This document shows, one piece after another, positions 397-61,743 of a stretch of 64,000 nt of DNA. The notes below the pieces were generated by a model. It made no database searches. It was not told the origin of the DNA and saw nothing but the letters and a program-made list of their open reading frames with translations. The stretch is from Oculina patagonica (Eukaryota), in NCBI RefSeq assembly GCF_052425735.1, contig NC_135765.1, forward strand, positions 32,116,001 to 32,180,000, read 5' to 3'. Position 1 is the stretch's first letter, and each line of letters starts with the position of its first letter. The position numbers and the translations under genes were made by a program.

Positions 397-2178
397 GTCA
401 AGTTGCTAGCTGGAGGCGAGATCTTGGGAAAAAGCGTTTATCCTGTGAAGACAACGGTGATGGACGGAGATCTGCCAATGAATACCAAGGCGTGTGGTAA
501 GTCTTCAACGTCTTAAACAATATGACCTCACTAAAAACTGTCTTAACAAGGTAACAAACACATATTACATATGTCACCCAAACCTCAGATCTGAAACCTG
601 GAAACCTTTGCTTCTTGCCTGTTGCCTGTGCTTGTCGTGTGTTTCGATTTAAGGTTTAAAATCCGTGGTTGAAAAACCCCCTAGCAAGCTGTATATTTTA
701 AATTCCACGTGCCTGCGTACGCGTATTTCCGCTCAATCTTTCCAATCGCTACCATTTTTGTTCCTTCAAAAAACTATTTTGGGGTATACTTTGATTTACG
801 TAAAAAGTGACATATTACATTGTGACGTTAAATATGATTTCCAGTCCGTACTGCGCAATCCCCGCCTGCAATGTTTGTGAGTCTCACAAACAGAAGAATG
901 TTTACTAGCAAAAATAAAAATTCCGGGACAAGACTTACCTTTTTCTTCATTATTAACGCCAGATATCATATCCTTGCAAAACAATAATAACGAGTAAAAG
1001 AAGCTCGACGGTATTTCAAACGGACGTTTTAGCTCATCGTGAATTCTTGAACAAAACGATCCGTAATGGCGAACTAAAAAACTTCATGTACGCTATCGCC
1101 GAAGTGTAACGTTTCAACGAATTCAAAACAAAAATGAAAACAAACCCTGAGTCTGCGCAGTACGGACTGGAAATCATCTTTAAACCTTTCAGTGCTGAAT
1201 TTCTCCAAAAACTGGGTTTTTTTTCTACCGTTAAACTGAATTTTTGATGGTACGATCCTGAATTTCCCTTAACTTTGCTTAAAAAGCACTTTTCCACAAT
1301 GCAGCAAGATGATTTTGAGGAAGATTCCATTAAAAATTGTACAAAAATGTACTTTGGTGCATGCGCATAAGCCAAAATTTGGACTTTTTTTTTTTTTTTT
1401 GCGAAATTGTTTCCATTTTTTTTTCTTGCTCCTTTTCCTTTCGTTTCTCTTGGCTTTGTTATTTCCACTACTTTCTACTGTATCCATCCTTCCTTTAGAC
1501 CAAAAAAGTTTTGATAAAAACATTGGTAAACCCTGTCAAGAGGACCTTGATCTTTTACAGGTGTTTTGGCCTTTTTAAGCACCGATTTTGCACTAAAAAG
1601 TGATTGACTTTTTCTCGATTAGCTCTGTTAGGATGCGACCGATACGCAAAATGAATAGTTCTTTGAAAAGGTCAAACCTAGCTCTATCAGATGCTTATCA
1701 CCAAAATCTGCTGACTTTTAAATTAATGACGTCACAAGTGGTTCATTGACTGCTCCTCCAAATGTCGACAAAAGTCGACTTTAGCACTGAAAGAGTTAAG
1801 GTTTGTGGAAGGGGGTACATGTACCATTTTCTATTGAAGATATACCAAAGGGTTAACTTTTCTGTCGAAAATAGCATGTAAAAAGGTAAGGGTTTAGACC
1901 TTGTGGCAGAGTTCCGCGTATAAACATTTTTCGAGGAATTGGAATAACCCTCCCCACGGCCAAGGGTAAAGTGATAAAAATTCTCCACTGTAAACTGAAC
2001 TTGTAACTGTTTATTTGTTCTAGGTGCCTTTGCATGGTGGTATGAAATGAATGATGTCAGCAAGGTAGCTTTAATTGCCGGCTTAATTCTTGTCATCATT
2101 TTTATGATGATGTGCTGCTGCTGTTGTTGCTGCAAGACCCGTGTTACTACGCGCCTTCACTATGTTAAAATACGTTAA
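397..2178 (+). CDS. Cluster paralogue 1 (partial: exons 4-5 only, rest upstream of window); poly-Cys single-pass membrane protein with truncated tail
   Basis: Exon 4 397-496 (cag|VKLLAGGEILGKSVYPVKTTVMDGDLPMNTKAC|gtaagt). Exon 5 2024-2178 (tag|GAFAWWYEMNDVSKVALIAGLILVIIFMMMCCCCCCCKTRVTTRLHYVKIR*). Similarity to the other paralogues stops abruptly after KTR (~2142). Confidence 0.8.
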
Positions 2179-2874
2179 AAATACGAAATTCTATGATTTT
2201 GATTTTATAACGATTTGAAAAAAATAATGCGATTGTATTTTTGGTACTTTCTGACTTACTCTCTTGTTAGATGTTGCACAAATAATATCCTACCTTGTTC
2301 GATGCTTGTATATTTGAGTATTAAAGTAGCGTTTTCTTTCAGTGAATAGTACTTCAAAAATTTGTATCCACAAAAAGGATATCAATTTTTTTCTTTAAAA
2401 AAAACAACCCGCTATAACAGATTACTTCTCTGCCTTAGTGCAAGGGCACCAAAGATGTCGTAGTTTTCTGCTTACATTTTTTGAGTTTTTCAGGAAGAAG
2501 AACTTTTTCTTGAACAAGTGAATACGTTTCTTTTTTTATTATTTAAGTGTTGTTCCGGTTTGCAAAACAAGCGAATACATCTAGACATGTTCGAGCTTGC
2601 ATCATGTAATGCTATCTTGTCAGAAGCAGTGTTAAGGTCTATAAAGATAACCTCCCAATTTGTCACTTACGAGGCTATATCTCCGTCGTTAAGTGAAATC
2701 TTCCAAATAAAAGATGACCTTCATAATATTCCATTATTTCTTTATGTCTCTGTAAAATTTGAGCCTAATCGCACCCATAACAGCCGAGAAAAAAAGCGTT
2801 TTAATTAAAAGATGCAGGTCAAGCAAAACTTCCGCCTAATGAATTTATTCATGCTGTAGGTGTCCCCCGCGACC
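2143..2874. mobile_element. Related transposon with its left end missing, abutting the coding exon of paralogue 1
   Basis: Right end ctaatgaatttattcatg..ccgcgacc|ttaa resembles the right end of the 2879-3679 element. Confidence 0.5.
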
Positions 2875-3679: not shown

Positions 3680-4730
3680 TTAATGAACAAACTAGCCAGT
3701 TTTCTAATAATATTTTTGTTTCAGTGGGTAGGATTTCTTAAGCAAACGACTTAAACAGGCACGGAACTGATCATGATGTGTCTTCGATTCATTGTGCATA
3801 CGTTCAGTTTAATCATCTCGGAATTACTGGTTTCACGTTATATTTTGACGCTCTATAAAGCGGGCACCTCGGACAGATGGAGCCGGTCCCGACGGTGTCC
3901 GTCTGACTGTTCCTCCATTATTAAATAAACTGTAATTTCTGCATTCATTCCATTGTGTCTCTTTGATATTGGACATTGTAACATAGCCCTTAGGGACGGA
4001 CCATTATTTTCTTGGTCTGGGGGGGGGGGGGGGCGAGAGGGTGGTATAAAAAAATATCCCCTGCAAACTTTTCTTTTAGTTTATGCATCTCTCCCAGGGG
4101 GGAGGGGGGGGCCTCCGTGATCAAAGTGACGGAGATGATCGAATCGAGGCAAAACTCAGGACCCAAAATTACCCAAAAAGTCCCTGGACCAAAAAAAAAC
4201 GCCCAAAAAATCCCTATTCAAATTACCCCTAAATTGCCAAGGCCGCACCAAGGCACTTAAGTTTGATTTTAATACCCAAAAAAATCCCCTATTTAAATCA
4301 AGTCACCCCAAAATATACCTGCCAAATTCTCCTACCCAAAAAAATCCCGGAATCGAAAATTTCGACCCCCAAAAAATCCTTCGCATGCACATCCCCGTCA
4401 CTTGGATCCCGGAGTACCCCCCCCTGGGGCATCCATGCTGCAAACAATTATTTTCGAAATTCCACCTATGTTTTGTTATACATATCGTGTTTGCAAACAA
4501 TTTATTTTGTCTTTCCAGGCCCTGCAAACAATTTTTTTTCAATATTTCCCGGTCAATTTCTCGTTGAAATTTTGGAAAGAAGTTGAGTAAGGTTGCATTG
4601 GATCGAGAAAAGGCTGAACGAATCTATTGTACCCCATGGCTCCTCGACTCAGTGTTTCACCACTACAGACTGGAAATCAGTCTTGCATAAATACTGCTTT
4701 GTGTTCGTGTATGTTAATGTTATAGCACAA

Positions 4731-4795
4731 TTCCGAGAAACAAAACTTCATTTCTAAGAAAACTACAAAACCTGTCAAACCGGAAATTTCCGGAA
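4731..4795 (+). promoter_or_regulatory. GAS-GAS-kappaB promoter module of paralogue 2
   Basis: TTCCGAGAA 4731-4739, TTCTAAGAA 4752-4760, palindrome CCGGAAATTTCCGG 4780-4793; ~85 bp upstream of the ATG; conserved in paralogues. Confidence 0.65.
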
Positions 4796-4875
4796 TCCGT
4801 GTCAATCAAGCGGCGGAGGCTGAATCACTTAGACGCCATCTGCATTGTGTTCCTTCAGTTGTCTTTTCTGTTAAA

Positions 4876-7800
4876 ATGTTTTCTTCAAGATACACTCTCG
4901 CCACTGGAGTTTTCATCCTTGTTTTAAGTCAACTTATTTCTTCAAATACAGGTATTTTTTTAATAATGCATATTTTAAAACTTATACTCTGTTATATGAT
5001 TTATGGCTATCGTTGATTATTAGCGCGAAGAACTAAGTCTTTATACACTGAGTGAATTTTTAAGTTCTCTCAGTATATAAAAGACGCGATTTGACGGCCC
5101 GTTTTGTCCGAAATTAATAAGAAAAGAGAACGCAGATAAAAATCGGTTCCACATAAATCCTTGTATTTCAAATGAAGCAAATCGTAGCGCGTTTATTAGC
5201 CAGCTATAACATGTTCATTCGACTGTTGTCAAAGTCCATGTGATGCTTGCCTTGGAGATTTGGTTGAACGCCGAGCCAGCCGTTTGTGTTTTAAAACCCG
5301 CGTCTTCAACGATCTTTCTGTTTTGCCATAGCATGCAATATCGCACTTTTTTGAGTCTTAAATGTTTGCAACTCATTTTGCATATTACGCACGGCCGGTC
5401 AGTGTAAAACGCAGACAGAAGACTGGGGGTAAAATGCAGATTAAGGGTAAATTGCAGACTGCGAACTGCAGAAAGGGGGTAAAATGCAGACCGAGGGTAA
5501 AGTAACGAAATATGAGTCACAAAGCCTTTTTGCCCCGTCGGTTCTATCCGAACGTGAGCAAGCGTTGAAAAGAAAATCGTTCAAAAGTTGCGTGATGGTT
5601 TATTAACGTTTAAAGAACTGCACATCAGGCGATGTTTCGCACGAGCGATCGAGCGATCACGGAGTTGAACTGGTAATAACATAAAATAAATTTTATTCCG
5701 TGGCCACAACTCTTTCAACAGTTTGTAACTGGCACAGATTAACCATTATGCAGTTAGGTAGTTAAAAACGGCTTTCCTTCGATAACTAACCGTCGCGATA
5801 AAACATAAAAAAGCATAAAAAAGGTACAAAACTATTATGTTTAGCGATCTTGTTGTGTCGGCATCGTAAAAAAAATAATATTCAGAAAATCTATAAACCG
5901 TTCAGTTTCATCCGGTTTACAAATGCAGAAGACTTAAAATTGTAGCCTGCGAACAGGCTCCCGAGTGGGGTTTGAGTGGGGTTTTTACGCGAGCGAGGCG
6001 ATTGAAGTGTCACAAAAATGTTGAAAATGCCTTTGCCGGTTAAGGAGGCTCGATGTATTTTTCTAGCCTAAGGGTGGCTGTTTTGAAAATTAAAATTATC
6101 TAGGATGCCAATGTTTGATTTTTGCCAAACTGAATACACCATAATGATCAAATATGACCAAATTTTATTTTTTTACCTGCCACTTAGTCACAAAGGTTAC
6201 CATAGCAACGATTGACGTTTTCTTTTGTTCTCAAACAAGCTTGATTTTCTCGAAATCTAGATTGACAATTGGTATTCATTTTTTTATATGTTTAAGTTTA
6301 GTAGATTGACTAACTGTTGACGTGTTGAAGTGAGCGTTGCTTCCTGAAAAACATAGCAACGTAATGCGTGCAAGAGCTACAATGCCTCTAGATCTAGAGA
6401 AGTAGACCTGTTCTCTGATTACCTACATTTCTGGTTACAGTAAAAAGCCGCGTATAAGAACCTAACATTTAAGAACCTGTTAGGCTAAAATTCTAAAACA
6501 GGTTCTTATTTTCAAAAAAGAAAAAATAATTTTCTCAAAAATATAGAATGAAAAAATATTCTCAAAAATATATTTATAACACAGTCTGTACACATTATAG
6601 TTACAGCATAGTTACAAGATTTATTGGGAATTATAGTGAAGGTTTCAGTATAGTTTTGATTTTAACGGAATCATATTAAAATAGTATAGTATTTTGCTTA
6701 CCGAAGCCTTCAAGAATACTGTTATTGGACATTAAAGAGCAGATCATTAAAAAATTCTACTTTATTTCTTGGACAAAAGTTAAGAACCTAATTAAGAACC
6801 CAGTAAGCCTAATTTTACACTAAATACCATTTATATAAGAACCTGTTTAGGCTAACTTGAAAAAACCTAGGTTCTTATACGCGGGTTTTTACTGTATATT
6901 ACGTATTATAATATCGATAGGAGTCAGCGCGCACTCTAAAATCTATGTTTTATCAGAGTATAAAACATAGAAAAATAATGTGTTATTGTTTTTCGTCAGC
7001 TTTCCTCGAGCTATAGCCACTCGTATCTATCAAGGGCGAATGGAATAATTGTTTTATAAAATCTTTTAATCACTGGACTTTTCACTTTGATGTAAACGAA
7101 GTGAGGCGGGAAAAATTGTGGCGCGGTGTTCACTTCGTGAGTTGAATGAAAGCGAGCGAGAGAGTTTTCTTTCAAAGATTTTCCTCGACAATCTCCTCTT
7201 TATTCGCCTACTCATGCTTGAAAAATATAACAGCAATTAAGGTTTACGGAAAGATTCGAAGCAATAGCTTTTCTAGAAATTATACGCCTTGCGCAAGTTC
7301 AACGAAGCAAGGGAACGGCTGTCATCGAGATTACTATTATGCTTAGACAAAATTGCACTCAGAGTCGGTGAAGCCCGGTGAAGTTTTAATATTTAACAAA
7401 TAAAGAAGCCTAAGCCATGTTTTATAATGTCATAAAACGCGACGAACATTTGAGAACTTTCGCCGTAGTGTCGAAGCGATTCTTTTTTCTTTCTTTCTCA
7501 TTTGGATGTATTGAAGCGAGTGAAGTGATTGGCAGAACTGAAGTGTGAGAGTTTAACAGGATTTGTTCTGCCAATATTTTTATTCCGTGTCAGTTTGCGG
7601 TTTTCGATTCTTGTTTCATAATTAATTTTCCGATTTCAGTGGCTCATAGAATGTTTCTTACTCATCATTAAAATAATGAGTGCAAACAATAAAGCTCTAG
7701 TGAAGAAATTATTCTACAGGACACGAGCGTGGGACAAAGAAAAAATCTGAGTCCCCGACGGGAATCGAACCCATGGCCTCCCAGATACCGGTTGGGCCCT

Positions 7801-10800
7801 CTAACTAACTGAGCTACGTGAGACTTGCTGTGAGCTAGGCCATTTTTACTAGGTTTCGACATTGCTGATCCTAGCAGTATGCAGGACGCGTGTCACTTAT
7901 CAACCTAGTAAAATGGCCTAGCTCACAGCGGGTCTCACGTAGCTCAGTTGGTTAGAGCGCCCAACCGGTATCTGGGAGGCCATGGGTTCGATTGCCGTCG
8001 GAGACTCAGATTTTTTCTTTGTCCCACGCTCGTGTCATGTAGAATAATTTCTTCACTATTTTTCACCGATCTTAAAAATCTACCATCTTTATTATTTACT
8101 ACAAATTTGATGATTTCAACATTGCTGATCCTAGCAGTATGCAGGACGCGTGTCACTTATCAACCTAGTAAAATGGCCTAGCTCACAGCGAGTCTCACGT
8201 AGCTCAGTTGGTTAGAGCGCCCAACCGGTATCTGGGAGGCCATGGGTTCGATTCCCGTCGGGGACTCAAATTTTTTCTTTGTCCCACGCTCGTGTCATGT
8301 AGAATAATTTCTTCACTATTTTTCACCGATCTTAAAAATCTACCATCTTTATTATTCACAATAAAGCTCTATATGACAACATTTTCTACTTCTATCGTGA
8401 GCGATGATTCTTCGGAATTTCTTCAGGTCATGGTTTCGATTCGTGGAAACCAGCGACTAAGGATCGTCACTCAGTCCTAATTTTTTTTTTTTACAAAGAA
8501 AGAATTTACGTTGTAAAACCTACCACGTAGGTCAGCATACATCGTTTCAGGATCACTGGAGGGTGATCCATGAAATATAAATAGTATATATCCCTGGCGG
8601 TCTTCAGTCCAACGTGAGCCTCCAGTTCTGGGAATCAACAGATCCAGATACTCTGGCACGTACATGACACTGAAAATTTCGGTAGACTTCTGGGTTACAA
8701 AAAAGATCAAAAGCCCATCAAAAGCTTGATATAAGCTTTACGAAAAGAGTAAATATAACAGGGAAGTGAAAAAATTCAGTTATTTCTTTCATGGCGTCTC
8801 CTCGCTCAGTTCCGACTTGTTACTCTTCGCCAATGGCCACAGCTGTCGCAAAATGGCTATATATAGAGCGGTTTTCACTTGAGTGTCGAAAGTAGTTTGC
8901 GTTTGCTTTGGTTTTGCATTACTACGCTTAGTGATTGGTTAAAAAATCTCGCGCCACTTTCTTAGCCAATTAGAACTAAAACCAAAACCAATCGTGACTC
9001 GCACGCGCACGCTTTCCCTCGCTTCGTGCCGGCTACATGTATTTGCTTCGAGTTTTGATTGGTTCACTGGATTGTCTGTTTCCTTTGTGATTGGCCGGAG
9101 TAATTACTTTGGTTTTGGTTTTACGACACTCAATTGAAAACTGCTCTATCTCACTCTTCAAGTTGAATAATCTCATTTTCTTCTAGCCGGCGGTTCCTGT
9201 AGCACTGGCTCTCGCAGGACTCTGGATAACGGATGTTCTATCAGTGCGGACTGCAGCACAATCACGTGCAAAATGGATTTTGTTGACGAACCAATCACTT
9301 TTAAGCTCAAGGTAACTCATTGGAAAGATTGTAAAATTTAGCAATATATCTCCTAAACTTTTATCAACAGTTTTGTCGTCGAGAGCACATTTAAAATCTT
9401 TCCAATGAGTTATATTTGAAGTGCATTATCATTCTCGATTTTCAGGAAGGCTTCTCCATCGATAAAATCAACCCCAGCAAAAAGATTAGACATTTAAAAG
9501 TGTTTCGTTTCTACTCTCGAAATATTGATTTTACTTACACTAAATTTCATTTATATTAGACAAGACAGCGCGGTTGACACTTAATTTTCCTTGCCTCTTC
9601 CCATGGCTACAAGTTAACACGTTTAGTCAGAATTTCACGATTTTGGCTAACAGTTATTTGCTTTTATTGCCTGTTAGGTCAATAAGTGTGATGACCCTGT
9701 GAGTGTGACCGCGTCAATGGACGTTCCAGATCTGTTTATTACGTGGTCCCACACTTACACTAGTGACGACATTGAAGAAGTGCCAGGCTTCACCGCATCT
9801 GTGCCTGGTGTCGTTTCTGCTGGCGTGTACGTTCAAGTCGGGCTCACTTCAAACGACGACGAACTGCGTCTAACGGGTGGTGCTTCGTGTAGTGCTCACG
9901 ATCAGTGATCGATGTAACTTCTTTGTGTGCAGCAAAACGCACTTTTGTTACGCCGTGCCCCATAGTTTCACTAACACTTGTTATCTCCTGATTATGAATG
10001 GACTTAACAATGTGTCGTATAAACAACACACAAGAACATCCTTTAGAAAGTTCTAAGAAAGAAGGGCTCGGCAAAGCTAACGATTTTGGAACCACAATAG
10101 AACTTTTTTTTTCAATACGTTACCTCCTAACCATATATATAGTGTCTTCTTAAACTGCCAAGTTGAATTGACAGCGTTCTATGACCTATTTAGACTCGCA
10201 TTTTTACCATTTTACTGACTGAAATAAAACTACCAACTGAAAGGAGGTTTTCACACTTTTTCATTTTGTCACAAATCTTAGCAATGTTAGGATCTGGAAC
10301 GCTCTGCGCAACATTAATATTGCGTACGACGAACGTCATTAATCTAGTCTCTCCATTTAAAGAACTATAAACCAAAGAGAGGACCTAAATGTGACAGCTT
10401 TTACCCTTTCTGAACAGGTAAAGCTACTAGCTGGAGGCGAGATTTTGGGAAAAGCCTTTTATCCTGTGAAGGTGACGGTGATGGAGGGAGATCTGCCAAT
10501 TAATACCAATGATTGTGGTAAGTTATATCAAATGTATGGCTATAACAAAAACTTTCCTTACAAGTTAACAAAAGTGTTACACATATCACCTTAGCCTCTA
10601 ATCTGAAATTAGAGAATATTTACTTCTCTTGGTCTGTCCGTGTGCCACGGTTTTTAGGACCTAAATCCATCGTCGAATGAATCTAGCAAGCTGTATCCTT
10701 TAAATTCCCGTGTGTGCGTTTTTCTTCTCAATCCTCTCCGTCTTATCATCTCTTCAGTAGTATCGAAATTATTTAAGTACGATTTTGGGGGTAATTCTTC

Positions 10801-17501: not shown

Positions 17502-18080
17502 CTATGTTTCTTCCAGCTCTTCGTACTTGAAGGCCATGTAGATAACGTACCCAGCAGACAATCCGTTTTGCAAATTTCCTGGATACAACGATGTGTTTGC
17601 CAACCGTTGATCACACTCCTCATAGGCGAAGTGAGATATTAGGGTATTTTCCAGAGCAAGGACGTACAGCTGTTGGTCCCAAACGTGTTTGTTGCAATCA
17701 TCTTTGAGCATACCACGGGTCACAGCACCTAAAACAACCAAACCATCATATCCTCTGTCTTTGTATTCTTCGTTCCAGCGTTTGCTTATACCGCCTAGCC
17801 TCCATGTATCTACATTGGTCGGGTTGAATATTTTACGCGTTCTTTCTACCGCGTACGTTTTCCCGATACAGAAAAGTTCGATTGCTCTTTCGGATTGCAA
17901 TTCCAAGGAATCTATTGTATCTTTTATTTTAGTGATCAGTGCATCTATTCGTTCCCGCGTTGTTTTGTTACGGAGATCAACCACGTTAAAAGAATAGTTC
18001 TTAACTATCCCCTTGCATAGTTCGTCAAAACTTGTACCACCTTGCGATGAACCTGTCGAGACAGACGCTGATTCAGCCAT
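17502..18080 (-). CDS. Intronless 192-aa uncharacterised protein, possible GIY-YIG-like nuclease fold
   Basis: Long uninterrupted ORF with normal composition in AT-rich DNA; motifs FCIGKT, RWNEEY, LALENTLI, RLAN and C-terminal YVIYMAF. Confidence 0.72.
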   Translation of the reverse strand: MAESASVSTGSSQGGTSFDELCKGIVKNYSFNVVDLRNKTTRERIDALITKIKDTIDSLELQSERAIELFCIGKTYAVERTRKIFNPTNVDTWRLGGISKRWNEEYKDRGYDGLVVLGAVTRGMLKDDCNKHVWDQQLYVLALENTLISHFAYEECDQRLANTSLYPGNLQNGLSAGYVIYMAFKYEELEET

Positions 18081-21430: not shown

Positions 21431-21472
21431 ACTTTTGAAAATGTATGTAGCTTAGCATACGAAACGTCAAGT
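21431..21472 (+). ncRNA. Minimal type-I hammerhead ribozyme variant (U3:A8) in the Penelope pseudo-LTR
   Basis: actt-TTGAAAA-t-gtatg(tagcttag)catac-GAAAC-GTC-aagt: stems I and II, a GAAAC core and a GUC cleavage triplet. Confidence 0.55.
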
Positions 21473-41758: not shown

Positions 41759-42495
41759 TTTGACAATCGCACGGTCTTGCTGGGGCTCAAAGGCTTGCTT
41801 TCCTCGCTCAATTGTTGTGTCACAACCGTGATACTTTGTCATCACAAGACCATTCCGAAGATTCTCGATTTATCGTCAATTTCCGTAATAGCAGGTATAC
41901 TGGACGCTGATTGGTCGTCATTTCTCGTGTTGACGATAAACGGGACAGCGATCGATACTGATTTGAAACGAGGTGGCAATCGGGCAGCAATCGGTACTTC
42001 AAATGGGCTCGCCTACAGACTGGAATGTTCGAAGTTAATTGATCGGGTTCCGACCAACCATCAGATGATAATTTCAGATGCCATTGCTCGCGTTGAGACG
42101 TTTTTGCAAGTTCTCGGTTCTTTCTATCATGTCTTATTTTACAATAAGAAGTGTGAATTGGCACAGCTTTCGCGGATTGTACTTTCTTGGTCAGCGATAC
42201 AAATATTTTACTGTTGCTGCGACTTTACGAACTTCCAAGTAGTTGAAAAATCGTTCGTTTCCTTTCAGTTGCGGAGCCGGAAATCAGTCTTGTCTTCGAA
42301 GTCAAGCAACAATTTCAAGAGGCAGAATGAATTCCTTTTGTAGTGACGAAGCAACTCTTTCGGGAGGCAGAATCAACAAATACATGAAGGTATTTGTTTC
42401 CAGAAAGTTCTCTGACCTATTGTTTACAAGTAGCCTTGCGGTTTGCCAAATTTGTTTATTATTATTGTTTCCGTGGGTTGGCTGTCAATTCCTTG

Positions 42496-48400: not shown

Positions 48401-51400
48401 GCGAGCGAGCGCATTAAAAGCAAAATAGAAGAAAAAGAGGACTGCTCGCATTCTGAAGACGTAGGCGTTCAGCCAATTCTTTAGAGATTTGAACTAAACA
48501 AGACGCTTATATGCGTGCTGTTTTGACGGAACACTGCCTAATTTTATTGGTGTATAGCCACTCGCTTTCCAAGACATAAGACAGACGTCATCACATTCGT
48601 GAAATTTTGGGGTTATGATGTAACTAAAGTGTATTTCGCAGCGCAAACGCTTTGGGAAACACTTTTAACGTGGCTTTTAACCGTTTTAGGCTATGTAGAG
48701 CTTTACGACTTCAAAAGTATATCTGAAGACTGTATGTCGAATCCAACACTAACCGTTACATGCAGTTTGTCATCGATAGGACTGAGCTCGACTTGAACGA
48801 AAACGCCTGTATCAATGATGCCATGGAAGGATGTAGTGAAACCTGGCACTTGTACAATTTCGTTACTGGTGTAAACATGGGACCAAGTGATGTGCAAATC
48901 AGGAACTTCCACTGTGGTAGTTGCGCTCACCTTGTCACCACATTTATTGACCTCACGGACAACAAAATCAATATCACATTTAGTAAGGGAAAGATTGATT
49001 CACATGTGTTGCATCTTTTTCTATTCAAAGTGTTGTACAGTAAAACCCACATAAGTTAGCCTAAGAAGGTTCCTAATACCGAATTTAATAAAATAAGCAC
49101 CTGTTTCAAATTTTAGGCTAAATGTTAGGTTTTAATGTAATGGGGGTCTCAATGGAAAGTCTAAGCCTAGCAGGTTCGTTATCACCAGGTTATTATGTGC
49201 GGGGTTTGCTGCACGTTGTGATGTCTAGCTGTTACTTTAGATCTGTTTCGTGTAAGTACTGAGGTTGATCAGAGTTAACTCCGGGTTGATTCACAAAGAC
49301 CAATCCCTAACGTCCTCGTTCGTGGGAGGTGGGCAACGGTGGAGTAGGGGACTGCCTGTCAGGGTGAAGTACAGTGGGACTTAGGTCCCGGGGCCGCTAC
49401 GGTAGCTGTGAAGGCCTGGCAGGAACCCTGAACAAGCTGGCAAATAGGGGCTATGGCAAGTCTGCAGTAGGCTAGTCACCCCCTCAGACTCAACATGTGA
49501 CTACAGAAACCGAAACAGAAGAGGCCTTATGCGTCCAATGGCGCGAAAAGGATCGATGATGATGATTATTCACAAATGAGTTGTTGTCCACGATGAAGCA
49601 ATTTCAACTGTTCGTTTCTGTCAGTATACTACGATCTCTACTACTGTACATGCACTGATTACCTTTAACTTAAATATTATAGGCATCTCCACAAACTTCA
49701 TTTCACACTTGATTGTGCTGCAGTCGCTACTGATGCTGCATCCATTCGCGAGAGTCTTGACAGAGCCATCGCAAGTGCCGTTGAGCTTTGCAGTCTCAGC
49801 TAAAAAAATGATTAATAATTTCAATATTTCAATATTCCCCTTGTTTAAAAACATCACTGAACATTTTCACTCACAAACACAATCACTTGAATTACTTTAT
49901 TGTTGAACGGCTGAACTGATGGCTTCAATATTCCTCCCGGCCGACCCCACCTGCTACCTAACTGCAAGACTGCTAAATGATACAGGACCAGAATAGAAAA
50001 GTAATGGTTAAGAAAACTTCCTTCTGTTTTATAGCACTCCCTTTGTTGTTGTTTTTTTACGAAATAAAAGAAAATTCTAATTTTCGGTCTTGTCGCAGGA
50101 TTCTCAATATTGAGTAGTCCAGTCCCTGAACTCTCTCTTCCGCGCCCTATATAGGGGCTGAACCCCTATAAAGAACGCGCGCGGAAGAGAGACATTGAGT
50201 CTTTAATAGATTTTTCCTAGCAAATTTAACGTTGCTGTATGCTTGCGAAAAAATTTTGAAAAACTGTTTAAAATTTAATGAAAGAAATCTTAGTCGCCAA
50301 GGTTTAAAATTTCCTAGAAAATCAACGCTAAAGTAAAACATTTTCCCGCTCAACCTCAGTTATTAATTTTACCCTTATAAGTCCATTTTTTCCCTAAAGA
50401 ATTGGTAATATTTCACCCGCAAAGAAGTACAAAAATTCAGTTATACAGAGCTTTTAATTTTTTTTTCGCAAACCAGAAATTCTAACCAAACTTTTAGTGT
50501 CTCGTACAGTCATGCGTAGCCGAACTCATCGATTCCGAAGGATGTTGAATTCTTAAAATGATTTTCAATTTTTTTTTAACTTTTGCAGACCCGAAACGAA
50601 TATGCCATTCGTGCTTCACAGGTCAACTTTCACCCTTTGTTAAGGTCCGAAGAAAGAACCTATAAAATATTTTTCTCTCGTAAAATTTATTTTGCTGTAT
50701 GCTTCTGAAATAAACTTCTAAAAATTTAATGACAAGAAATCTTAGTCGCCGAGGTTTCAGAGAACTGGCCGTAAAATTCCAAGAAAATAAACAGTAACCG
50801 TCGGCAAAACATTTTTCCCGCTCAATTTCAGTTATTTATTTTACCGTTATAAGTTCATACTTTTCCTAAAGAAATGATAAAAGAAGTAGAAATGTCAGGT
50901 GTATAAAGCTTAATTTTTCACAAACCAGAAAGTCTAACAAAACTTCGATAATCCGACGCAAACAATCATGCGTAGCCGTACCTATCGACTCCGAAGGATT
51001 TTTAATTTTTAATGATTTTCAAAAGTTTTTAAAAACTTCTGCAGACCCGAAACAAAAATGCCATTCGGAATTCCTGCTTTACAGATCAACTTCTACCTTT
51101 GGTTAACTTATAATCCGAGGCAAGAACTTATAAAAAAGTTATCCCTGGTATATTTATTTTGCTATGAAATTTCGAAAAAAAGTTGTAAAAATTTATGACA
51201 AGAAATCCGGGGTCTCTGACTTTCCAAAGAAATTCCAAGAAAATCAACGCTACTCAATGCGCTGCGCTATACTTTCGAAAAAAACTTTTAAAAAATTAAT
51301 GACAAGAAAACTTTAATAGTCGCCGAAGTTTTTAAACAAACGCAAATTCCAGGAAAATCGAAGCTAACCGTTGGCAAAACATTTTCCCGTTCAACCTTAG

Positions 51401-52481
51401 TTATTTATTTTACGTTTATAAGTCCATTACTTTTCCTAAGGAATTAATTACATTTCAACGTAAAGAAGTAAAAAATTCAGGTACACAGAGCTTAAATTTT
51501 CGCAAACCAGAAAGTGAAACACAAAACTCCCAGAGTCTCGAAAGGTCAGGTTTCGCCAAACCCATCGATTCCGAAGAATGTTTAATTTTTAATGATTTTT
51601 TTTTTTTAAATAAAAACTTTTGCAGACCCGCAAGGAATATACTATTCCTACTTCACAGATCAACTTCCACCCTTGCTTACCATCCGAGGAAAGAACTTAT
51701 AAAAGAATTTTGTCTCGCATTTTGCCGTATACTTTATTTTAATAACAAGAAATATTAGTCGCCGAAGTTTCAAACAAAATAGCAAATTCCAAGAAAATCA
51801 TCGCTAACCGTCGGCACAAGATAAAAGTACATTAATTTTCCAAAGGAATTGATACATTTCACCGCAAAGAAGTAGAAAATTCACGTATATAGAACTTAAT
51901 TTTTCTCAAAACAGAAAGTCTAACAAACTCGGCGAGAGCCTAATAAGGTCATGGTTAGCCAAATCCAGCGATTTCGGATGTTTAATTTTTAATGATTTTT
52001 TTCTTAAGTTTTTAAATTTTGCAGAACCGAAATGAATATGCCACCTTTGGTTGTGATCGAAGGAATGATCTTAAAAAGATTTTTCCCTTGTAAATATGTT
52101 TTGCAGTCTAGTTTCTAAATATGAAAACGTTTAAATTAAAAGTTTAATGACAAGAAACTTTAGTCGCCGATCGCGAGGTTTCCACGACATGGTTAAATTA
52201 CAAGAAAATCAACGCTGGCGGAGGCAAATCATTTTCCGTCGTACTTTTTTCAATTTTTTGCTTTAGCTGTAAAGAATAAGTTGCATTTCACCGACAAAAT
52301 GGAGCTTTTAAGTATATAAAGCGCTACTTTTCACACTTATAATAAATCATAACCATAAATTGTTACTCCAGCGAGTGAGTTTTTAAGAAGTAAGGAAATT
52401 ACCTGCAACTGAAGAAATTACTTGGCTTAAAACAAGAATAAAAACTCCAGTGGCAAGTCCAGTGACTCCTGGCGCAGTCAT
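45446..52481 (-). CDS. Cluster paralogue 5 with two tandem ectodomain modules, 8 exons; in-frame TAA in module 2 (pseudogene or module-skipping isoform)
   Basis: Exons 52481-52403 (signal), 49799-49663, 48951-48754, 48042-47952 (GC donor), 46955-46816, 46673-46485 (GVYVQV>GV*VQV, stop at 46524-46526), 45833-45743, 45540-45446 (TM, ends CCLCYCCIKCCC*). Confidence 0.75.
49270..49566 (+). mobile_element. Non-autonomous RTE-like retroelement with a decayed HDV-like ribozyme at its 5' end
   Basis: tcccta-acg-TCCTCGTT-cgt-gggaggt-gg-gcaacggt-ggag-taggg at the 5' end; gccttatgcgtcc..(gat)n 3' end. Confidence 0.5.
50200..52330. repeat. Degenerate tandem array (~450-580-bp unit, ~4-5 copies) in intron 1 of paralogue 5
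   Basis: Recurrent gacaagaaatcttagtcgcc, accgcaaagaagtagaaaattca and gcagacccgaaa motifs; single related units at ~40460-40900 and ~61280-61640. Confidence 0.75.
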
Positions 52482-52577
52482 TTTCACAGAGGAAAGACAA
52501 GAAGCTACCATATGCAGATGGCGCCTCCGCCGCTGTTAAACCCTTCAGCTTCGACAACTTGATTTCTGAGGGATTCT

Positions 52578-52638
52578 GGAAATTTCCGGTTTGACTGGTT
52601 TTGAAGCATTCTCCAAAACGAAGCTTTGTTTCTTGAAA
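52578..52638 (-). promoter_or_regulatory. kappaB site with degenerate GAS pair, paralogue 5
   Basis: GGAAATTTCC 52578-52587; the GAS positions have decayed (ttctccaaa, ttcttgaaa). Confidence 0.5.
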
Positions 52639-53368
52639 TTATGCCATAACATAAACATGTCATTAGCATGGAGCAATATTTATCCCAGAGTCGTTCTCAC
52701 TAACAAACTGAATGGTAAAACAATCACAACATGGGGCACTGAAGATTCGTTCGGGCTTCCCAAGATCCACTTCGACCTAACTCTTAACCTTTCCATAATT
52801 TTCAACATGGATAAAAGCGGGTAGAACGTAATAATGATGGCATTTCTCACTTTGTTTTTACAGATCCCGTCCCGATCCCGTAGCACAGCAGTAAAACCAG
52901 TCAAGTAATTCCCCCTTCAAGAGTAGGAATAGTCTCCCCACGGGATCAACAAGGTAGAAGTTACCGAGGATGGCGCGACTCCCTTAATGTGTAACACATT
53001 TGTAACAAATTAGGTGGCTGTCCAAAGAAATGAGTTCGTTAAGGGTGTTTTACGATTACCTGGTTACAAATCTGTTGTTATAGTTTTGCGAAACGAATTC
53101 ACTTGTATCTGATAAACCATAAAGTTCAGTACGCGTTACGGTTGTCTTGTGCAACTTTTTATTTTTATCAATCATCAACACAAACTGACAATGCTAAGAA
53201 GTTAAAACGTAGTAAAATAATTACGCTCTATTCTATACTCCAGATATTTGCGAAAAACACCGCAGTAGAAGCAGAGGACTAAATATTTTGTATTCTCGTG
53301 AGATAAAGCATTAGACTACATGGAGGTAATTCTTTTTTTACATGAAGGGCACGGAGTTATCACCTCTT

Positions 53369-54738: not shown

Positions 54739-55513
54739 TTAAGTCAAAATGTTAGCCCGTCTGTCAACTTGTCTCCATCGTTGCTTGAGTCGTCACACAA
54801 CACTTTTGCGTGACAAATCTAAGTAACAACAGCGAAAGAAATTAAACTATCATCCTATTACGGCAAAAGCTTACCCTACAAATCATACTAACAGCATACG
54901 TTAATGCGTGGGTGCGCAGTGTGAAAGGGTTAGAGCCTTTTAAAATTTGAAATAATATTTAGCTGTCAACGAATCAGCATCAACAGATTCAAGAAAATAA
55001 CACAACAATTTATAACAGTTTCGGCTAAAACTCAAACGCTCTTTTGTGGTCTTACAAGCGCTGTGCATTTTTAACAAAGAATTATGACTTATAACAAACC
55101 TAGAGTAACGGGCGAAGTTTTAATTTTTTAACAACAAATCACAACGCCAGCATGTGTAGCATTTTATAGCTAATTTTTGTGTCTGCCTGGTGCGGACAAA
55201 TTTGTCAAAAGATCTTGTACAAAAAGGTTGATGCTATTAACAGCTGATATTATTCGAAAAAGAAGCAGAGGTTTAGACTCGTGAAAAACGTGTAATGAGA
55301 GCCGGATTTGAAAACAACAGACAAGTCAAATTGGAGGCCATAAGAAAAAGAGGAATTCCTTTCACACAGCGCACTTAAGATAAGTTTCGGAAAAATCGTG
55401 TACCAAGAGCCTCCGTTTCTAAATACCAGCGCTCACGTTTGTCAAAACACATGCAGTAAGGAATCAAAACCCTGGGAACGAGATTAGTATCAGTATTGGA
55501 AGAACAGCTCAAA

Positions 55514-58500
55514 TTAAATTTCATTGACCAGCGGTCGCATAGGAACGGTGGTGTTGGTGCTGGTTGCCATGACAGAAGGGCCAACAGCAGGTTGCAAAAT
55601 GACGGTCCCTTGGTTGTTAGGACGGGATTTGCAGCAGCAGCAGCAACAGCAGCACGCGATCACGATGATGACGAAAAGAATCGCCCCGCCAACCACAAGC
55701 CCTTTGCCGACATCGCCCATCTCATACCACCATGCAAAGATACCTAAACCAAAAAATCATTTTATAAGGTCAGTTTTAGTTGGAAAATTATATATCACCT
55801 CTAGCCTTGTAGCGGACAAGTTCTACTAGTATACACGGATCTAGAGTTTCAGGCTTCCGGTCCAAATTCAAAGGAAAAGTAAGCATCATTTAGTCAGGCC
55901 ATTGTTAAACATCGCAAAATACAATAGCCTGGCTTAATGAGTCTCGCCTTTCTTTTGAATTTGGACCGGAAGTCTGAAACTCTGGATCCGTGTATATATA
56001 CTTACCACAGGCGTTGGTATTAATGGGCAGATCTCCCTCCATCACTGTTGCCTTCACAGGATAACCCCCTTCTCCCAGAATATCGCCTCCAGCTAGGAGT
56101 TTCACCTGTAAAAAGACAACAAAAACTCTCAGGTTTTTTGCCCTCTACTTGTTTGGTAGTACAATAGCCTGCATAGCAGGCGTCTGTGTAGTTTTTAGCG
56201 CGCGCGCCTTTCGCGTTTCTCCCATACGCGCGCTAGAAACTAACGACGCCTGCCACGCAGGCTAGTAGTACAACGAAAAAAATTACGTCATCTGTGACGT
56301 TCATCGTGCAACTGCTGGCGCAATGTGTTCCAGGTCTTCAGACTGCTGCGCTTTTATGACGCCTTTAACAATAAATTAGTGTATAAGATTGAACAACAAC
56401 AACAACTTTATTTGCACCTTTTCTTTCAATTAAAATTAGCAAAACAATAAATAAAATAAATAGAGTAAAGTGCATGGCTGCCCAGAATAACCACGATTGG
56501 CTAACAAGATTGGGCAGCCATACTTAGTTTTTATTACAATAATTTATAAAAAGGTCAGGTATATTTAATATTTACATAGCAAACTATACAACACACAAAA
56601 ACAAAACTAAGTAGGCTTAAAGAAAAAATTAATGGAAAAAAAGATGAAAAATGACGTATTATAGTTATAAATATAAAATGTTCAGTTAATAGCTTGTTTT
56701 TTTTATATTTTTTCTTAAATTGTTTAAGTGACAGAAGCTTAATGTCATCACTGATAGCATTCCAGATTTTAGCGCCCTGATATCTAATATTAAAGATTCC
56801 ATAATTTGTTCTGGTTTTGGGTAAAGCATAAGTCATTCTAGAGGAAAATCTTGTATTGTAACCATGAGTTTCTTTTGCCGAAGTGAAAAAAACATCAAAA
56901 TAAGAAGGGAGAAGTTGGTTTTTAAATTTGTACATAAAAACAGCAATGTGAAAAGTTACTTCATCAAATAATTTGATAACATTTAGATCTTTGAAAAGTG
57001 GACTTGTATGTTCAGAAAAGCTAGAGAAAGTTATAATTCTAATGGCTTTTTTTTGTAATACAAAAAGAGGTTGCAGAGAAGTTTGATAAGTATTATCCCA
57101 AGCTATTAAACAATATGTTAAAAATGGATAAACAAGAGCATAATAAAGGTCCAGCAAGGTTTTACTGTTAAGATAATAGCGAAGTTTAGAAAGAATTCCT
57201 ATACTTCGTTTAATCTTTTTTGCAATGAAATTAATTTGACTTTTCCAGTTAAGACGCTTATATGAGCTCTCCCGTTCTTGTGTGTGTTACGGCTTATACG
57301 GTGTTCTGCAAAGTTTCCCCATTATAAAAATATAGCACAGAAGTCAGTAGGATTATTGAAAAATTCGTTTAGTCGCTCGGAACTTGGGAACCACTTTCCC
57401 GGCTCAAAAAGATGTCATAACTGTGTACTGATCAGTTGTGTCGTACACAAAGTACCAACCTTTAGATGTAGTTCGTCGCCGTTTGGAGTGAATCCGACTT
57501 GAACGTACACACCGGCAGAAACGAGACCATGCAAGGACGCGGTGAAGCCTGGCACTGCTACAATGTCGTCACTGGTGTAAGTATGGGACCACGTGATATA
57601 CAGATCAGGAACGTCCATTGAGGCGGTCACACTCACTGGATCATCACACTTGTTGACCTAACAGGCAATAAAATTACTATCACTTTTAGTCCAGTTTGAA
57701 AAGAGCTTATGATGAATGGTTGAGACCCGTTTTCTTTTCCTTTCTTGCTTTATTAGTTTGGAAATAGTTCTCTTACAACTGTTAACTGGGGCCGTAAAAT
57801 TGTGGCTAACTGTGTTCACTCAGTGGCGAGTACAAAAAATATCAACTGCTGTTTTGCCTTAACTCCAAATTCTTAGAACTAGTTTTAAACGACTGGTATT
57901 ACAGCCCGTGAGAAAAGTTAATCTCTCGAGATTAAGAATGAAAGGGTTAATGGCAAATACTGTTTGCTGGCGTAAAGCCTTCTTGGAAAACGAAAATAAA
58001 AGATGCATTTCACATGTGATGTCGAGGATAAAACTGTCGATTACAATTGAAATAACTATGACAAAAATATGTAAATAAGTTAAATACTATCGTATCCTTT
58101 AAGAACTAAGAATGAAACAATTCCAAAATCTTTTTATTGAAGAATGGTTCAGACATCTACAATGTTGATGTGATTACCTTCAGCGTAAGTGTGATAGGCT
58201 TGTCGACAAAATCCATCTTACACGTGATTTTGCTGCAATCTTCACTGATACTGCATCCGTCACCGAGGGACGCGTCGGGACACGACCCGTCAATTGTTAT
58301 AGAATGTTGATCATCGTAGACGTCGCCTAAAAAAAAGACAACACTTGATTGGCTGACAAGAAGATGCTTCATGGTTGAAGCATGTTGAGTACAGTTTCTT
58401 GGACAAAATGGTAAAGAAAAACCAAATCAAGTGAATACATATACCTAATATATAGCTCATGGTCATCCTTTTGACTTTGTCAGCCATAGAGAACTATCTT

Positions 58501-61500
58501 ACCCAGTGTCTAAATAATCAAAGATTCTTGGACGAATAACATCTGTCTATCCCACCACTTAAAGTTCTAAACAGTGGTCCATGTTGGATCAATGAAACGT
58601 AACTTTATTTGATGTGATCAGAGCACCAACGCTAGTCTATACATTTGAAAGCAAGTTTTGTTGAAAACTTCGCAACCTAATTTTCAGCTATACCCCAATT
58701 CAACTTAAAATTTCGTATTCTCCTATGTGTCCTCACTAATGTGAATTTCGCATTGTTAACTGGGATTAATTATTTAGAATTCTCGTAATTTGCCTAAAAG
58801 TTGTTACGACTACTTTTTTATCGCAGCTTGATTTATTCATGTTTGCACCAAGAATGTTGAGAAAATCAATTCATTTTTTTTGTCCTGATTAAATTTTGTA
58901 TGTCATGCATCACATGCGGAGAAATTATCATTCTAAAAGCCTTTCTCATTTTATGTGTAAATCAGTTTCAAAGAAATGTTAAACGTTACTTTGTTTTACT
59001 TTTTTACTAGCTTTTATTGACCTTTCAAAGTTACTCGATTTTAAAAAAACTGTAATGTACGATTCTAGACGGGTAAGTACCATTTGGGATCACACATATT
59101 TATTTCTTCTTCTCTTATTTAGCAATTTTTACTGATATTAATTTACATCAATTCGATGAATTTCAATATACCGTTGTTTACAATTCTTACATGTTTCTGT
59201 TGAAGTCTAGTCTCTCTCGCAGCCGTTTTAAGTGTCGTCACTTAACGCTCCTCCCCACAAACGGCCGTTTGTGGGGAGGAGCGCTGCGTGACGACACTAA
59301 AAACGGCTGGCCCCGAGGAAGACTAGTTAAAGTCTAGCTCTTTGCAATTTATGAATAAGGTGTGCTCACCTCCAAGATCGCGAGATTCCCATAGCTAGGC
59401 AAAGTAGCTACCGCGAGAGCAAAAGCAATTTTAGCAGTGGAACGTTGATTTAACGAACCTCTATATAACGAAGTCCTCGGTATAAAGGCGAACGATATTC
59501 TTCAGCCCGGCCAAAGTGACAAAAAGTGTATGGAGGAGGACCTCGATATAACGAAATCCTCGTTATCACGAACACAATCCGAAAGCCCAAACGTAAAATG
59601 TCCCTCGATATAACGAAAACGTGTCAACACGCAACAAAAGATGAATGCGGAACACACCAACAAGGATGAAAATCCTTTAATCCTGTAACACTGAGAGAAC
59701 AAGTTCATCAAGTACATATGTCCATATCAATGTGCATATATTATACATTACAAATCTTATTTTCAGAAATCGTTAATATCCGGGTGCGCAGTGCAACGTA
59801 ACAGGGGTAAAAACTGATTAGCTATACCTCGATATAACGACCATTTTGGTTGTTTTTCCGAAACTTCGTTATATCGAAGAACCCTTGTTGTAACGAACAA
59901 ATTTTCACAGTCCCTTCGCGCTTCGTTAAATCGAGGTTTTTACTGTAAAAGCTGTCCCTGCTAACATAAATGTAAAACTATCTACGATCGCGAATCGACA
60001 CTATGCTCTTGTAACGACAAAGAAAGTCGTAGCCAAGCTTAACGAAGTGGGTATCTAAGCTCGTTAAAATCAGTTAAAATCGATTCACTCCAGCCACAAA
60101 AATTGCAGCAAACAGCCTGTTTTTCATCAGTTTCTTCCTTCCCTTCTTGCAGTCAGATGACTTGTAGACTTAATTTCTTCTTCTGTAAATTCCCTAAAAA
60201 CACGAGGCACGTTACCATGATTTTTCTAGTTGATCGCCTGATCTATCAAATGATTTTTCTTACACTGACGAATGTATACGTACTTGTGTAAGAATTTAAA
60301 TGCAGTCTTCTGAGAGATAAAACTGAAATAAATCACTTTTTGTGGGGTTTTTTTCCTTCTGATATTTGCACATCCTACAAAAATTAAATTATTTCCCTCA
60401 TTGACGTGCCTAGTGAAAGATATTTACCTCGCCGCTTGCAGGTCCGCTTCGCGGCTCGGTAGATATCCACCACTATCCACCCCATTGCGGGGAATAAATT
60501 CAAATAATTGTTTAATATAAGCCGGCTTCTAGAAGTTTCCAAAATCAATAAAGTTTAGCAGATAAAAATTCTAATCAAAATTACAAGTTTACTTTCCAGC
60601 CTTTTCAGAATAGCGAACTCTTCAAAATGATTTCACACTGCGCAGATTAGCGCTATCAATGAGCTTTTTCGATTCTTGCTCAGTATGTCACGGATTACAT
60701 TTAAAAACTAGAAAAATAGACTTGAATGTGCCAATTTTTAAAGCAGAACAAAATCCTAAAGAATGATGCAAATAACATGCTGGTTTAACTGCATGTTTAA
60801 TAAAAAATTTCGCTTCGGTTAGACAATGGGTTACCTTGTTGTCTAACAGCTAAAGTGATAAAAGTTCGCTTTGGTTAAATCATGTATCCGAGACAGGAAT
60901 GAAAAGAAAGGAAACACAAAGGTAGATCTCAAGCATTAATAATAAAAACCTTCCATAACTTCTCGAAACTTCCATAATTTTGCAGCAGTGATCGTTCTGC
61001 GAGTAATGCTGTCAAAAAAAATAAATTAAAATTCGAGGTCTACCTTCTGTTTACCTTCTTTATGAAGTTTATATCAAGCTTTAATAGTTATTTCGACGAG
61101 CTTATAATCGTTTTTGTCACCAGATCTCTAACTAACGAACCTTCGAGAATAATCACGTACGGTCAAGTCTGCGGTATCCGCCATCGATTCCAAGAATTCG
61201 AGACTTATTGAAAAGGCGCGGAAGGATATTGGTATCTATTTTCCACGGAACAACTTTTACCAATCGTGCAAAAACTAATCAAAATGCTTTAAAGAATTAA
61301 CACATACAAATTCTTTCTCTTGTAACTTTCGTTTGCTCTTTCTTGCGAAGAAACTATAAAGGTTTTCTAAAACGAATAATTAGTCGCCGTTTGAGACGTT
61401 TGAGGTTTCCACGAAATCCCGACATGTGCCAAATTCCGAGAAATTATCTCTCATGCTAATATTCTTCTTTGAATCTTATTATTTTCCACTTTCAGTTACC

Positions 61501-61743
61501 AATTGTTAACGGTTCTTTAACTTTTCTCATAAAGAATTCAGTAACAACATTTCACCGCAAGGAAGAAGACAATTCAGATGTCCGCTAAAGAGCTTTTACA
61601 ATTTTTGCACTAATAATTAATGCATAACCATAAATTACAACAAGTTTGCATCAAATAAAAACCCTACCTGCAGTTGAAGAAAATAGCTGGCTTATAACAA
61701 GAACGAAAACTCCTGTGGCAAAAGCGTGTCGTGGAGAAAACAT
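55514..61743 (-). CDS. Cluster paralogue 6, 5 exons, intact (~250 aa): signal peptide, Cys ectodomain, TM, C8 tract, short tail
   Basis: Exons 61743-61668 (MFSPRHAFATGVFVLVISQLFSSTA), 58326-58178, 57657-57460, 56105-56006, 55743-55514. All introns GT-AG; total 753 nt in frame. Confidence 0.88.
55832..55995. mobile_element. Foldback hairpin MITE next to the exon-4 donor of paralogue 6
   Basis: Long inverted repeat tacacggatctagagtttcag../..ctgaaactctggatccgtgta; a second copy at ~62806-62970. Confidence 0.8.
56392..57255 (-). mobile_element. LINE (CR1/L2-like) 3' portion in intron 3 of paralogue 6
   Basis: LYYALVYPFLTYC..LQKKAIRII..HGYNTR..GAKIWN ORF; 3' stem-loop and (GTT)n tail. Confidence 0.85.
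59435..59945. mobile_element. pogo/mariner-type MITE
   Basis: cagtggaacgttgatttaacgaa / ttcgttaaatcgaggttttactg ends; internal cctcgatataacg repeats. Confidence 0.65.

Follow-up and report, generated by a model that had tools for sequence, protein, structure and literature searches.

A convergent tandem cluster of genes for small cell-surface proteins with an unnamed ectodomain in the stony coral Oculina patagonica

A 64,000-nucleotide stretch of contig 8 of the 529-Mb Oculina patagonica assembly (G000:C8:32116001–32180000; hereafter the window, whose own positions are used for all features) carries repeated copies of a gene for a short single-pass membrane protein with a run of cysteines (Cys) behind its transmembrane helix. 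What are these genes, and what might their products do? An earlier note on this DNA had described six tandem paralogues and had proposed that they are rapidly evolving receptors for immune, self/non-self or symbiont recognition. Here, we found that the six related genes are real and form a transcribed cluster, that they encode small proteins of the cell surface, and that the proposed immune role and rapid evolution are both unsupported.

A transcribed cluster of six related genes

To find recurring exons, we scanned the six frames for motifs and compared all six-frame fragments with one another. This returned five exon types: a signal exon behind a conserved upstream block, three ectodomain exons, and an exon for the transmembrane helix and the Cys run. 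Six ectodomain modules and six transmembrane/poly-Cys exons were found where the earlier note had placed them. Exon models were hand-built from splice sites read in the DNA, and their translations were compared with deposited proteins. Every copy agreed with the claimed common exon phases of 1, 0, 0 and 1. The products of the window genes are identical to proteins deposited for O. patagonica, with an exact match for the spliced models of B, D and G and for the B/C chimeras described below. Genes A, B and C lie on the + strand (0.4–28.6 kb) and genes D, F/E and G on the − strand (33.0–61.7 kb), and the two groups converge at ~29–33 kb:

397–2178, + strand: 3′ part of gene A (LOC144664435); exon 4 at 397–496, opening at position 397 itself, and exon 5 at 2024–2178 (transmembrane helix, CCCCCCC, short tail, stop); translation equal to the C-terminus of deposited protein P0120.
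4876–12843, + strand: gene B (LOC144664428 isoform X5); exons 1 to 5 at 4876–4951, 9187–9311, 9678–9875, 10418–10517 and 12602–12843; spliced model identical to P0111 (XP_078381670).
24684–28585, + strand: gene body C (annotated within LOC144664428); exons 1 to 5 at 24684–24759, 26211–26350, 26730–26927, 27385–27484 (GC donor) and 28353–28585; from the exon model, RefSeq isoforms and RNA joints.
33012–41842, − strand: gene D (LOC144663627, 281 amino acids); exons 1 to 5 at 41692–41842, 37717–37853, 36996–37208, 36464–36560 and 33012–33139, with two stalk exons of 60 nucleotides (nt) each, phase 1-1, at 34969–35028 and 34302–34361; spliced model identical to P0081 (XP_078380762).
45446–52481, − strand: gene F/E, two modules; first module with exons 1 to 4 at 52403–52481, 49663–49799, 48754–48951 and 47952–48042 (GC donor); second module with exons 2′ to 4′ at 46816–46955, 46485–46673 and 45743–45833; last exon 5 at 45446–45540; from the exon model and RNA joints.
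55514–61743, − strand: gene G (ACROYT_G029592 / XP_078381665 / KAL9965750, 250 amino acids); exons 1 to 5 at 61668–61743 (ATG at 61743), 58178–58326, 57460–57657, 56006–56105 and 55514–55743; spliced model identical to P0107.

The earlier note had counted five complete copies and one partial copy. The sixth copy, A, is in fact complete as well, and only the edge of the window truncates it. Exons 1–3 of A lie upstream of the window, with exon 3 at C8:32115782–32115979 (22–219 nt before the window) and the upstream block at C8:32102196, 13.8 kb before the window start. Six copies are a lower bound: a genome-wide search with a profile of exon 3 gave 13 matches, and a region of ~165 kb on contig 8 accounts for 12 of these.

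Just to the right of the window, at C8:32181207–32197976 (L018:1207–3942; L020:317–3147 and 7608–7976), we noted more distant family members in which exons 2 and 3, the first two exons of the module, are fused and CC alone follows the transmembrane helix. Their tails carry a PPSY motif, a possible WW-domain ligand. These deep paralogues keep a C-terminal KVP[LM]QPL[IL]NEV, the same motif as the canonical tail described below.

Transcription and splicing were observed in RNA contigs. Over 45.3–51.3 kb, contigs from four runs contained the canonical joints of exon 5 with exon 4′, exon 4′ with exon 3′, exon 3′ with exon 2′, and F exon 4 with F exon 3. The joint between exon 2′ and F exon 4, which uses the GC donor, was present in three RNA runs; F and E thus belong to a single gene that carries two ectodomain modules, a finding that bears out the claimed variation in domain number. 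A separate seventh gene for the E module (45.4–47.0 kb) was rejected on the same junction. The GenBank model of F/E (P0001) differs from our exon model. RNA-type runs contained up to 0.36 of the sampled words over 45.4–49.8 kb, and 0.21–0.30 over gene G (55400–58400), approximately the exon share.

Upon inspection of the F/E reading frame, we noted an in-frame TAA in exon 3′ of the reference (46524–46526). In contigs of three RNA runs this codon reads TAC (Tyr), together with a 6-nt insertion, and the frame is open. The stop is thus not a fixed pseudogene mark; either it is one allele, or the sampled corals differ from the reference at this site. Two stretches in F intron 1 (49500–49700 and 50115–50145) had an RNA contig depth of 100–650 with loose ends on both sides, and probably belong to dispersed repeats. 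D and F/E have homologous 3′ flanks (32161–32867 and 44328–45239); the last exon, of the short-tail type, and its flank were therefore duplicated as one unit.

B and C are linked by annotated transcripts. Exon 1 of C opens with TTG, where the other copies have ATG, and there is no in-frame ATG upstream; this exon had zero RNA depth in all four runs. The bodies of B and C are ~17 kb apart, and RefSeq isoforms X1–X5 of LOC144664428 join them: X2 consists of B exon 1 and C exons 2–5, X3 of B exons 1–2 and C exons 3–5, and X4 of C alone from an internal Met, without a signal peptide. The spliced chimera models translate exactly to isoforms X2 and X3. Over 24.3–29.3 kb, a single RNA contig of 1261 nt covers C exons 3, 4 and 5 and ~0.95 kb past the exon 5 acceptor, and uses the GC donor of C exon 4. 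C is probably expressed from the B promoter and with the 5′ exons of B.

Some RNA contigs on C exon 3 (26730–26927) carry B-like or G-like bases, and those running into C exons 4–5 are B-like at six of ten variant sites. The B-like bases suggest gene conversion or haplotype structures that differ among individuals.

The earlier note had also reported frequent lesions. The TTG of C and the stop in exon 3′ of F/E are present in the reference, as is a GG donor at B exon 3, where C and G have GT. RefSeq joins at this GG, and the GenBank model P0175 takes an in-frame GT 39 nt upstream. By contrast, exon 4 of C and exon 4 of F each have a GC donor; we considered these two sites as further lesions, but both are spliced in RNA. 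The lesions are therefore fewer and softer than had been claimed. Stalk variation was borne out by the two extra exons of D, which encode RYNYTT… and RYNFTT… repeats. D also has its own exon 1, with a different signal peptide, and lacks the upstream block shared by the other copies.

This block was delimited by blastn and by an alignment with invariant columns:

4715–4815, + strand: upstream block of gene B, holding TTCCGAGAA, TTCTAAGAA and CCGGAAATTTCCGGAA.
24522–24616, + strand; 52571–52652, − strand; 61819–61896, − strand; 30434–30508, − strand: paralogous blocks.
30433–30624, − strand: orphan fragment of the upstream block, not followed by a first exon.

In genes B, C, F and G (and in A by homology) the block sits ~110–190 bp ahead of the ATG, and it recurs in the orphan fragment. 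Its alignment shows long invariant runs, including TTCCGAGAA, TTCTGAGAA and CCGGAAATTTCCGGAA, and it holds two TTCnnnGAA sites and GGAAATTTCC. A dispersed repeat was considered and rejected, since the 529-Mb genome holds exactly six copies of the block, all of them at the cluster. It is plausible that the block is a shared regulatory module. Shared promoters of a STAT/NF-kB type had been claimed. The conserved block with its TTCnnnGAA sites and GGAAATTTCC is real, but D is without it, and the palindrome CCGGAAATTTCCGGAA would fit paired ETS cores as well as NF-kB, so that STAT/NF-kB is one candidate option.

Protein architecture, predicted fold and relatives

An alignment of 25 full-length relatives gave the order of parts: a signal peptide, a variable and often acidic N-terminus, an ectodomain of ~145 amino acids with six conserved Cys, a Trp-rich F-x-W-W stretch, a transmembrane helix, and a run of 5–9 Cys at the cytosolic face. 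The ectodomain is encoded by three exons, and its Cys follow the pattern C-x8-11-C-[ST]-[ILV]-S-x-D-C-x4-C … VNKC … C-G, with the motifs WSHTYTSDDI, VPGF, GVYVQV and LLAGG. The description in the earlier note of a signal exon, a ~140-amino-acid six-Cys module (SIS-D-C, VNKC, PGF, GVYVQV, LAG), variable N-termini and a helix followed directly by a Cys-rich tract was accurate on each point, in the exon models as well as in the relatives. A signal peptide, a single transmembrane helix and juxtamembrane cytosolic Cys, the layout of a type I membrane protein, were all found in P0107, P0111, P0081 and P0120.

In most species the tail ends in …[ST]x[ST]VPMxPLVxE[AI]; the canonical tail is ~35 amino acids long and contains no Tyr. 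Within the window, all canonical features come together in G alone, whose C-terminus reads VPMRPLVNEI. The tails of B and C finish with PLFYNT and PLVHQT, respectively, and A, D and E end shortly after the Cys run.

To which family does the ectodomain belong? Single exons, fused-exon relatives, ten full-length relatives and 30 domain sequences gave no Pfam family match, and the scans returned sub-threshold noise only (EB, Mucin, EphA2_TM, LptD_2, CCTL2_WNK). A sequence-profile search of the PDB returned one chance match (E 0.34). An AlphaFold2 model of G residues 36–178, built on a 30-sequence alignment, was confidently all-beta, with ten strands, a mean local confidence (pLDDT) of 87.6 and a predicted template-modelling score (pTM) of 0.80. 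Foldseek with this model found nothing in the PDB at E ≤ 0.001 (best TM-score 0.27). In Swiss-Prot entries of the AlphaFold database (AFDB) the best match had E 0.026 and TM-score 0.21, and no cnidarian entry was among the 30 matches shown. An exhaustive VIA-align search of 48,161 chains reached a best Z of 5.5, below its stated noise level of 7–8. The statement that the ectodomain falls in no named family therefore holds for Pfam, the PDB and Swiss-Prot.

The earlier note had named four folds to be checked. Three of these were not found. For ML/MD-2 (NPC2, MD-2, Der p 2) there was no ML match in Pfam and none in the Foldseek PDB search or among the top 50 VIA-align matches; for Ig/FN3 there was no Pfam match, and no solved Ig-fold structure was prominent in the Foldseek PDB or VIA-align searches; and no reviewed coral skeletal matrix protein was matched by fold among the 30 Swiss-Prot matches shown. 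The fourth, DUF4773 (PF15998), is an uncharacterised domain of secreted proteins of arthropods, molluscs, nematodes and others. Like the Oculina ectodomain it is a Cys-bearing, all-beta extracellular module of similar size. Among AFDB clusters, the best Foldseek matches were uncharacterised cnidarian relatives, followed by Lingula, oyster, copepod, pherophorin-domain and DUF4773 proteins, the last at TM-score 0.54–0.55 and E ~1e-3 between two predicted structures. In the ESM Atlas, a cluster whose members are all (100%) PF15998 gave a TM-score of 0.63 over 111 residues (root-mean-square deviation 3.0), again between predictions, and the similarity of language-model features to DUF4773 was 0.78, a lead only. 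By contrast, at E up to 5 the PF15998 hidden Markov model appeared for none of the exons, the full-length relatives or the 30 domain sequences, and hhalign of the family against eight coral DUF4773 sequences (mostly their C-terminal half) gave a probability of 0.2%. DUF4773 is thus the nearest named fold as judged from predicted structures, with no sequence-level membership. True DUF4773 matches in the Oculina genome are unlinked to the cluster (contig 9, 25868067–25877713 and 27958153–27958332).

Profile searches collected 80 representatives, and later 51 and 66 proteins. Members occur in Acropora, Montipora, Porites, Pocillopora, Stylophora, Orbicella, Actinia, Nematostella and Hydractinia, and all relatives are annotated as uncharacterized. 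Branchiostoma and Ptychodera have mucin-like transmembrane proteins with two or three modules and no Cys run, and one relative has a C-terminal ShK-like domain in place of the transmembrane helix. The architecture is conserved across Anthozoa. In a maximum-likelihood tree Oculina A, B and C grouped together, as did F and E, and acroporid and pocilloporid sequences formed clades of their own; G and D were not placed. Duplication has therefore been largely lineage-specific. Tandem duplication has enlarged the family, as has the duplication of exon cassettes of phase 1-1. Both the three-exon module and the stalk exons are such cassettes, and module number and stalk length can therefore change without a break of frame.

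Selection was measured by pairwise NG86 estimates and by pooled ratios of nonsynonymous to synonymous differences (pN/pS) in sliding 20-codon windows, which is a crude measure. The corresponding ratio of substitution rates (dN/dS) for the ectodomain was 0.19–0.32 among A, B, C and G, and values of up to 0.66 were reached in pairs that include D, E or F (dS 0.23–1.15). Pooled pN/pS was 0.06–0.77, and no 20-codon window exceeded 1. The VNKC…WSHTY core was the most constrained part and the N-terminus before the first Cys the least. The ectodomain is therefore under moderate purifying selection with no evident diversifying selection, and these values lend no support to the claim of rapid evolution.

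Proposed function and alternative explanations

What might such proteins do? We favor, with a probability of roughly 0.6, the explanation that the locus is a convergent tandem cluster of anthozoan small type I membrane proteins with a cleavable signal peptide and an unnamed, disulfide-bonded all-beta ectodomain, of which G is the canonical form and the other copies are derived. The Cys run would be S-acylated at several positions and would thereby keep the protein within ordered membrane. For the ectodomain, we propose a putative binding module for an extracellular ligand or partner, and the conserved C-terminal peptide may dock a cytosolic sorting or signalling partner. G would then be an ancestral-type working receptor or adhesion protein, and A–F would be derived copies whose tails are shortened or degenerate; some of these copies are perhaps partly disabled in the reference haplotype.

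Several points weigh against this explanation. S-acylation, ligand binding and tail docking are deduced from the sequences and from general knowledge of juxtamembrane cysteines, and a literature search by gene and protein identifiers and by poly-cysteine, transmembrane and coral returned no paper on the family and no functional datum. The exon-3 paralogues are 90–95% alike, and some RNA contigs therefore cross-map or are mosaics. RNA support for the B-to-C splices comes mainly by way of the RefSeq models. The junction of F exons 2 and 3 is absent from the listed RNA joints, and contigs pass the F exon 3 acceptor into the intron. Lastly, a homodimer prediction for the G ectodomain scored 0.00, which is uninformative either way.

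The reading put forward in the earlier note, an immune, allorecognition or symbiont-recognition array under birth-and-death evolution whose working copies differ between individuals, is speculative, and we consider it unlikely. The tandem, lineage-specific duplications are in keeping with it, as are the variable domain number and stalk, the nonsense codon of the second F/E module that reads Tyr in RNA of other samples, the donor lesion of B and start-codon lesion of C, and the subfamily-specific upstream block with its two TTCnnnGAA sites and GGAAATTTCC; paralogues without the tail could serve as decoys. However, dN/dS was below 1 wherever measured, and the architecture and tail motif are kept across Anthozoa, with the module also present in amphioxus and acorn worm. 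The Pfam scans gave no domain of immune signalling or recognition (no TIR, Death, Ig, LRR or lectin domain), the canonical tails have no Tyr-based motif, and the promoter motifs are short, with a palindrome that could equally well be ETS sites. The immune role is thus neither refuted nor backed. Indeed, none of the findings that the earlier note had named as speaking against it, namely a confident match to a well-characterised non-immune family, a lack of spliced transcripts, or strong purifying selection with a stable copy number, was seen in full.

We also think it unlikely that the copies besides G, and perhaps A and D, are mostly decaying duplicates whose C and F/E RNAs are read-through or non-productive. 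C without an ATG and with a silent exon 1, the GG donor of B, the reference stop in exon 3′, the intron sequence kept upstream of F exon 3, the orphan promoter fragment, and the ends of B and C, which depart from the conserved motif, would all fit decay. Yet the frames of B, C and F are open over 240–340 codons, as is that of E bar one codon, and the stop in that codon is missing from RNA of three runs. Moreover, dN/dS among A, B, C and G is far under the neutral value of 1, and RefSeq isoforms supply C with a signal peptide from B exon 1.

Doubtful, in our view, is a reading that combines an old domain with a new use. An ancient unnamed metazoan module, found in cnidarians, amphioxus and hemichordates and remotely like DUF4773, would have been built in corals into a cluster of polymorphic, palmitoyl-anchored self/non-self or symbiont receptors, in which copies differ between individuals (in a working or broken second module, or in a donor allele) and B and C share 5′ exons. 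Such a polymorphic recognition system would not be based on Ig, lectin or LRR folds.

That the products are structural proteins of the matrix, mucus or skeleton, with an ectodomain shed from a membrane-anchored precursor, is improbable. The fold neighbours include extracellular proteins with pherophorin, EB and EGF domains, the relative with the ShK-like domain has no transmembrane helix, and a DUF4773 protein appears in a proteome list of octopus skin mucus (DUF4773 is mentioned only in passing in the papers found, this one included). Against this stand the want of a fold match among Swiss-Prot entries, which presumably cover the reviewed coral skeletal matrix proteins, the presence of the family in skeleton-less sea anemones and a hydrozoan, and the conserved cytosolic tail and Cys run, which favor a membrane role.

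A role in membrane fusion or remodelling, on the layout of viral fusion glycoproteins, is highly improbable: the order of F-x-W-W, transmembrane helix and Cys run is present, and more than 12 of the 50 VIA-align matches shown are viral envelope glycoproteins or cellular fusogens (among them class II fusion proteins and EFF-1/HAP2; Z 4.3–5.3), but all these scores lie below the noise level, Foldseek against the PDB finds nothing, and the 145-amino-acid ectodomain is without the fusion-loop and stem domains of known fusogens. Nor was a class II-type fusogen recognised, as the ectodomain is a single domain with no significant match to domain I and the fusion-loop domain.

Comparison with known systems and neighbouring elements

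Viral envelope glycoproteins such as coronavirus spike have a Cys-rich, palmitoylated endodomain behind the transmembrane helix. The Oculina proteins have the same order of a Trp-rich stretch, a transmembrane helix and a dense cytosolic Cys cluster; the analogy is one of layout only, with no sequence or significant fold relation, and the Oculina ectodomain is one small domain. In the clustered protocadherins and UGT1A, variable first exons are spliced to constant 3′ exons. LOC144664428 likewise joins common exons to alternative ones, as seen in its RefSeq isoforms; in B/C, however, it is the 5′ exons that are common, the bodies number only two, and the arrangement may be read-through between tandem duplicates. 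The Alr cluster of Hydractinia, a cnidarian, encodes type I membrane proteins with Ig-like, highly polymorphic ectodomains. Like the Oculina cluster it is tandem, with single-pass products, variation in copy and domain number, and pseudogenes. The Oculina family differs in having no prominent match to a solved Ig fold and a dN/dS below 1.

Corals have many lineage-restricted surface proteins, and the Oculina family is a well-defined case, with a confidently modelled domain that lies outside Pfam and the PDB and ranges from Hydrozoa to invertebrate deuterostomes. The unusual cytosolic Cys run and the sharply conserved C-terminal peptide offer handles on cell type, partners and ligand. The locus also illustrates how phase 1-1 cassettes and tandem copies make stalks and domain numbers vary, and how a duplicate without a start codon, such as C, may remain expressed through a neighbour's first exon. 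If polymorphism among the copies and a response to challenge or symbionts were established, cnidarians would have a recognition receptor of a new kind.

Other elements lie between and within the genes. Between B and C, a remnant of a Penelope-like retroelement (19559–21504) is flanked by inverted repeats (19559–19736 and 21327–21504) and holds open reading frames (ORFs) at 19982–20320 (RVT_1, E 3.8e-6) and 20743–21324 (a weak GIY-YIG match). The GenBank model ACROYT_G029589 (P0126, 438 amino acids) fuses the Penelope-like ORFs to gene C and looks like an annotation artefact. Also between B and C is an intronless ORF of 192 amino acids that opens with ATG (17502–18080, − strand). It has no Pfam match, and its language-model features are nearest to unnamed and GIY-YIG/T5orf172-like clusters (0.93–0.94, a lead only). 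A 200-amino-acid ORF in G intron 3 (56555–57157, − strand) likewise has no Pfam match; we take it to resemble the C-terminal part of ORF2 of a non-LTR (long terminal repeat) retrotransposon. Lastly, B intron 1 contains direct and inverted repeats of ~260 bp (7696–8384).

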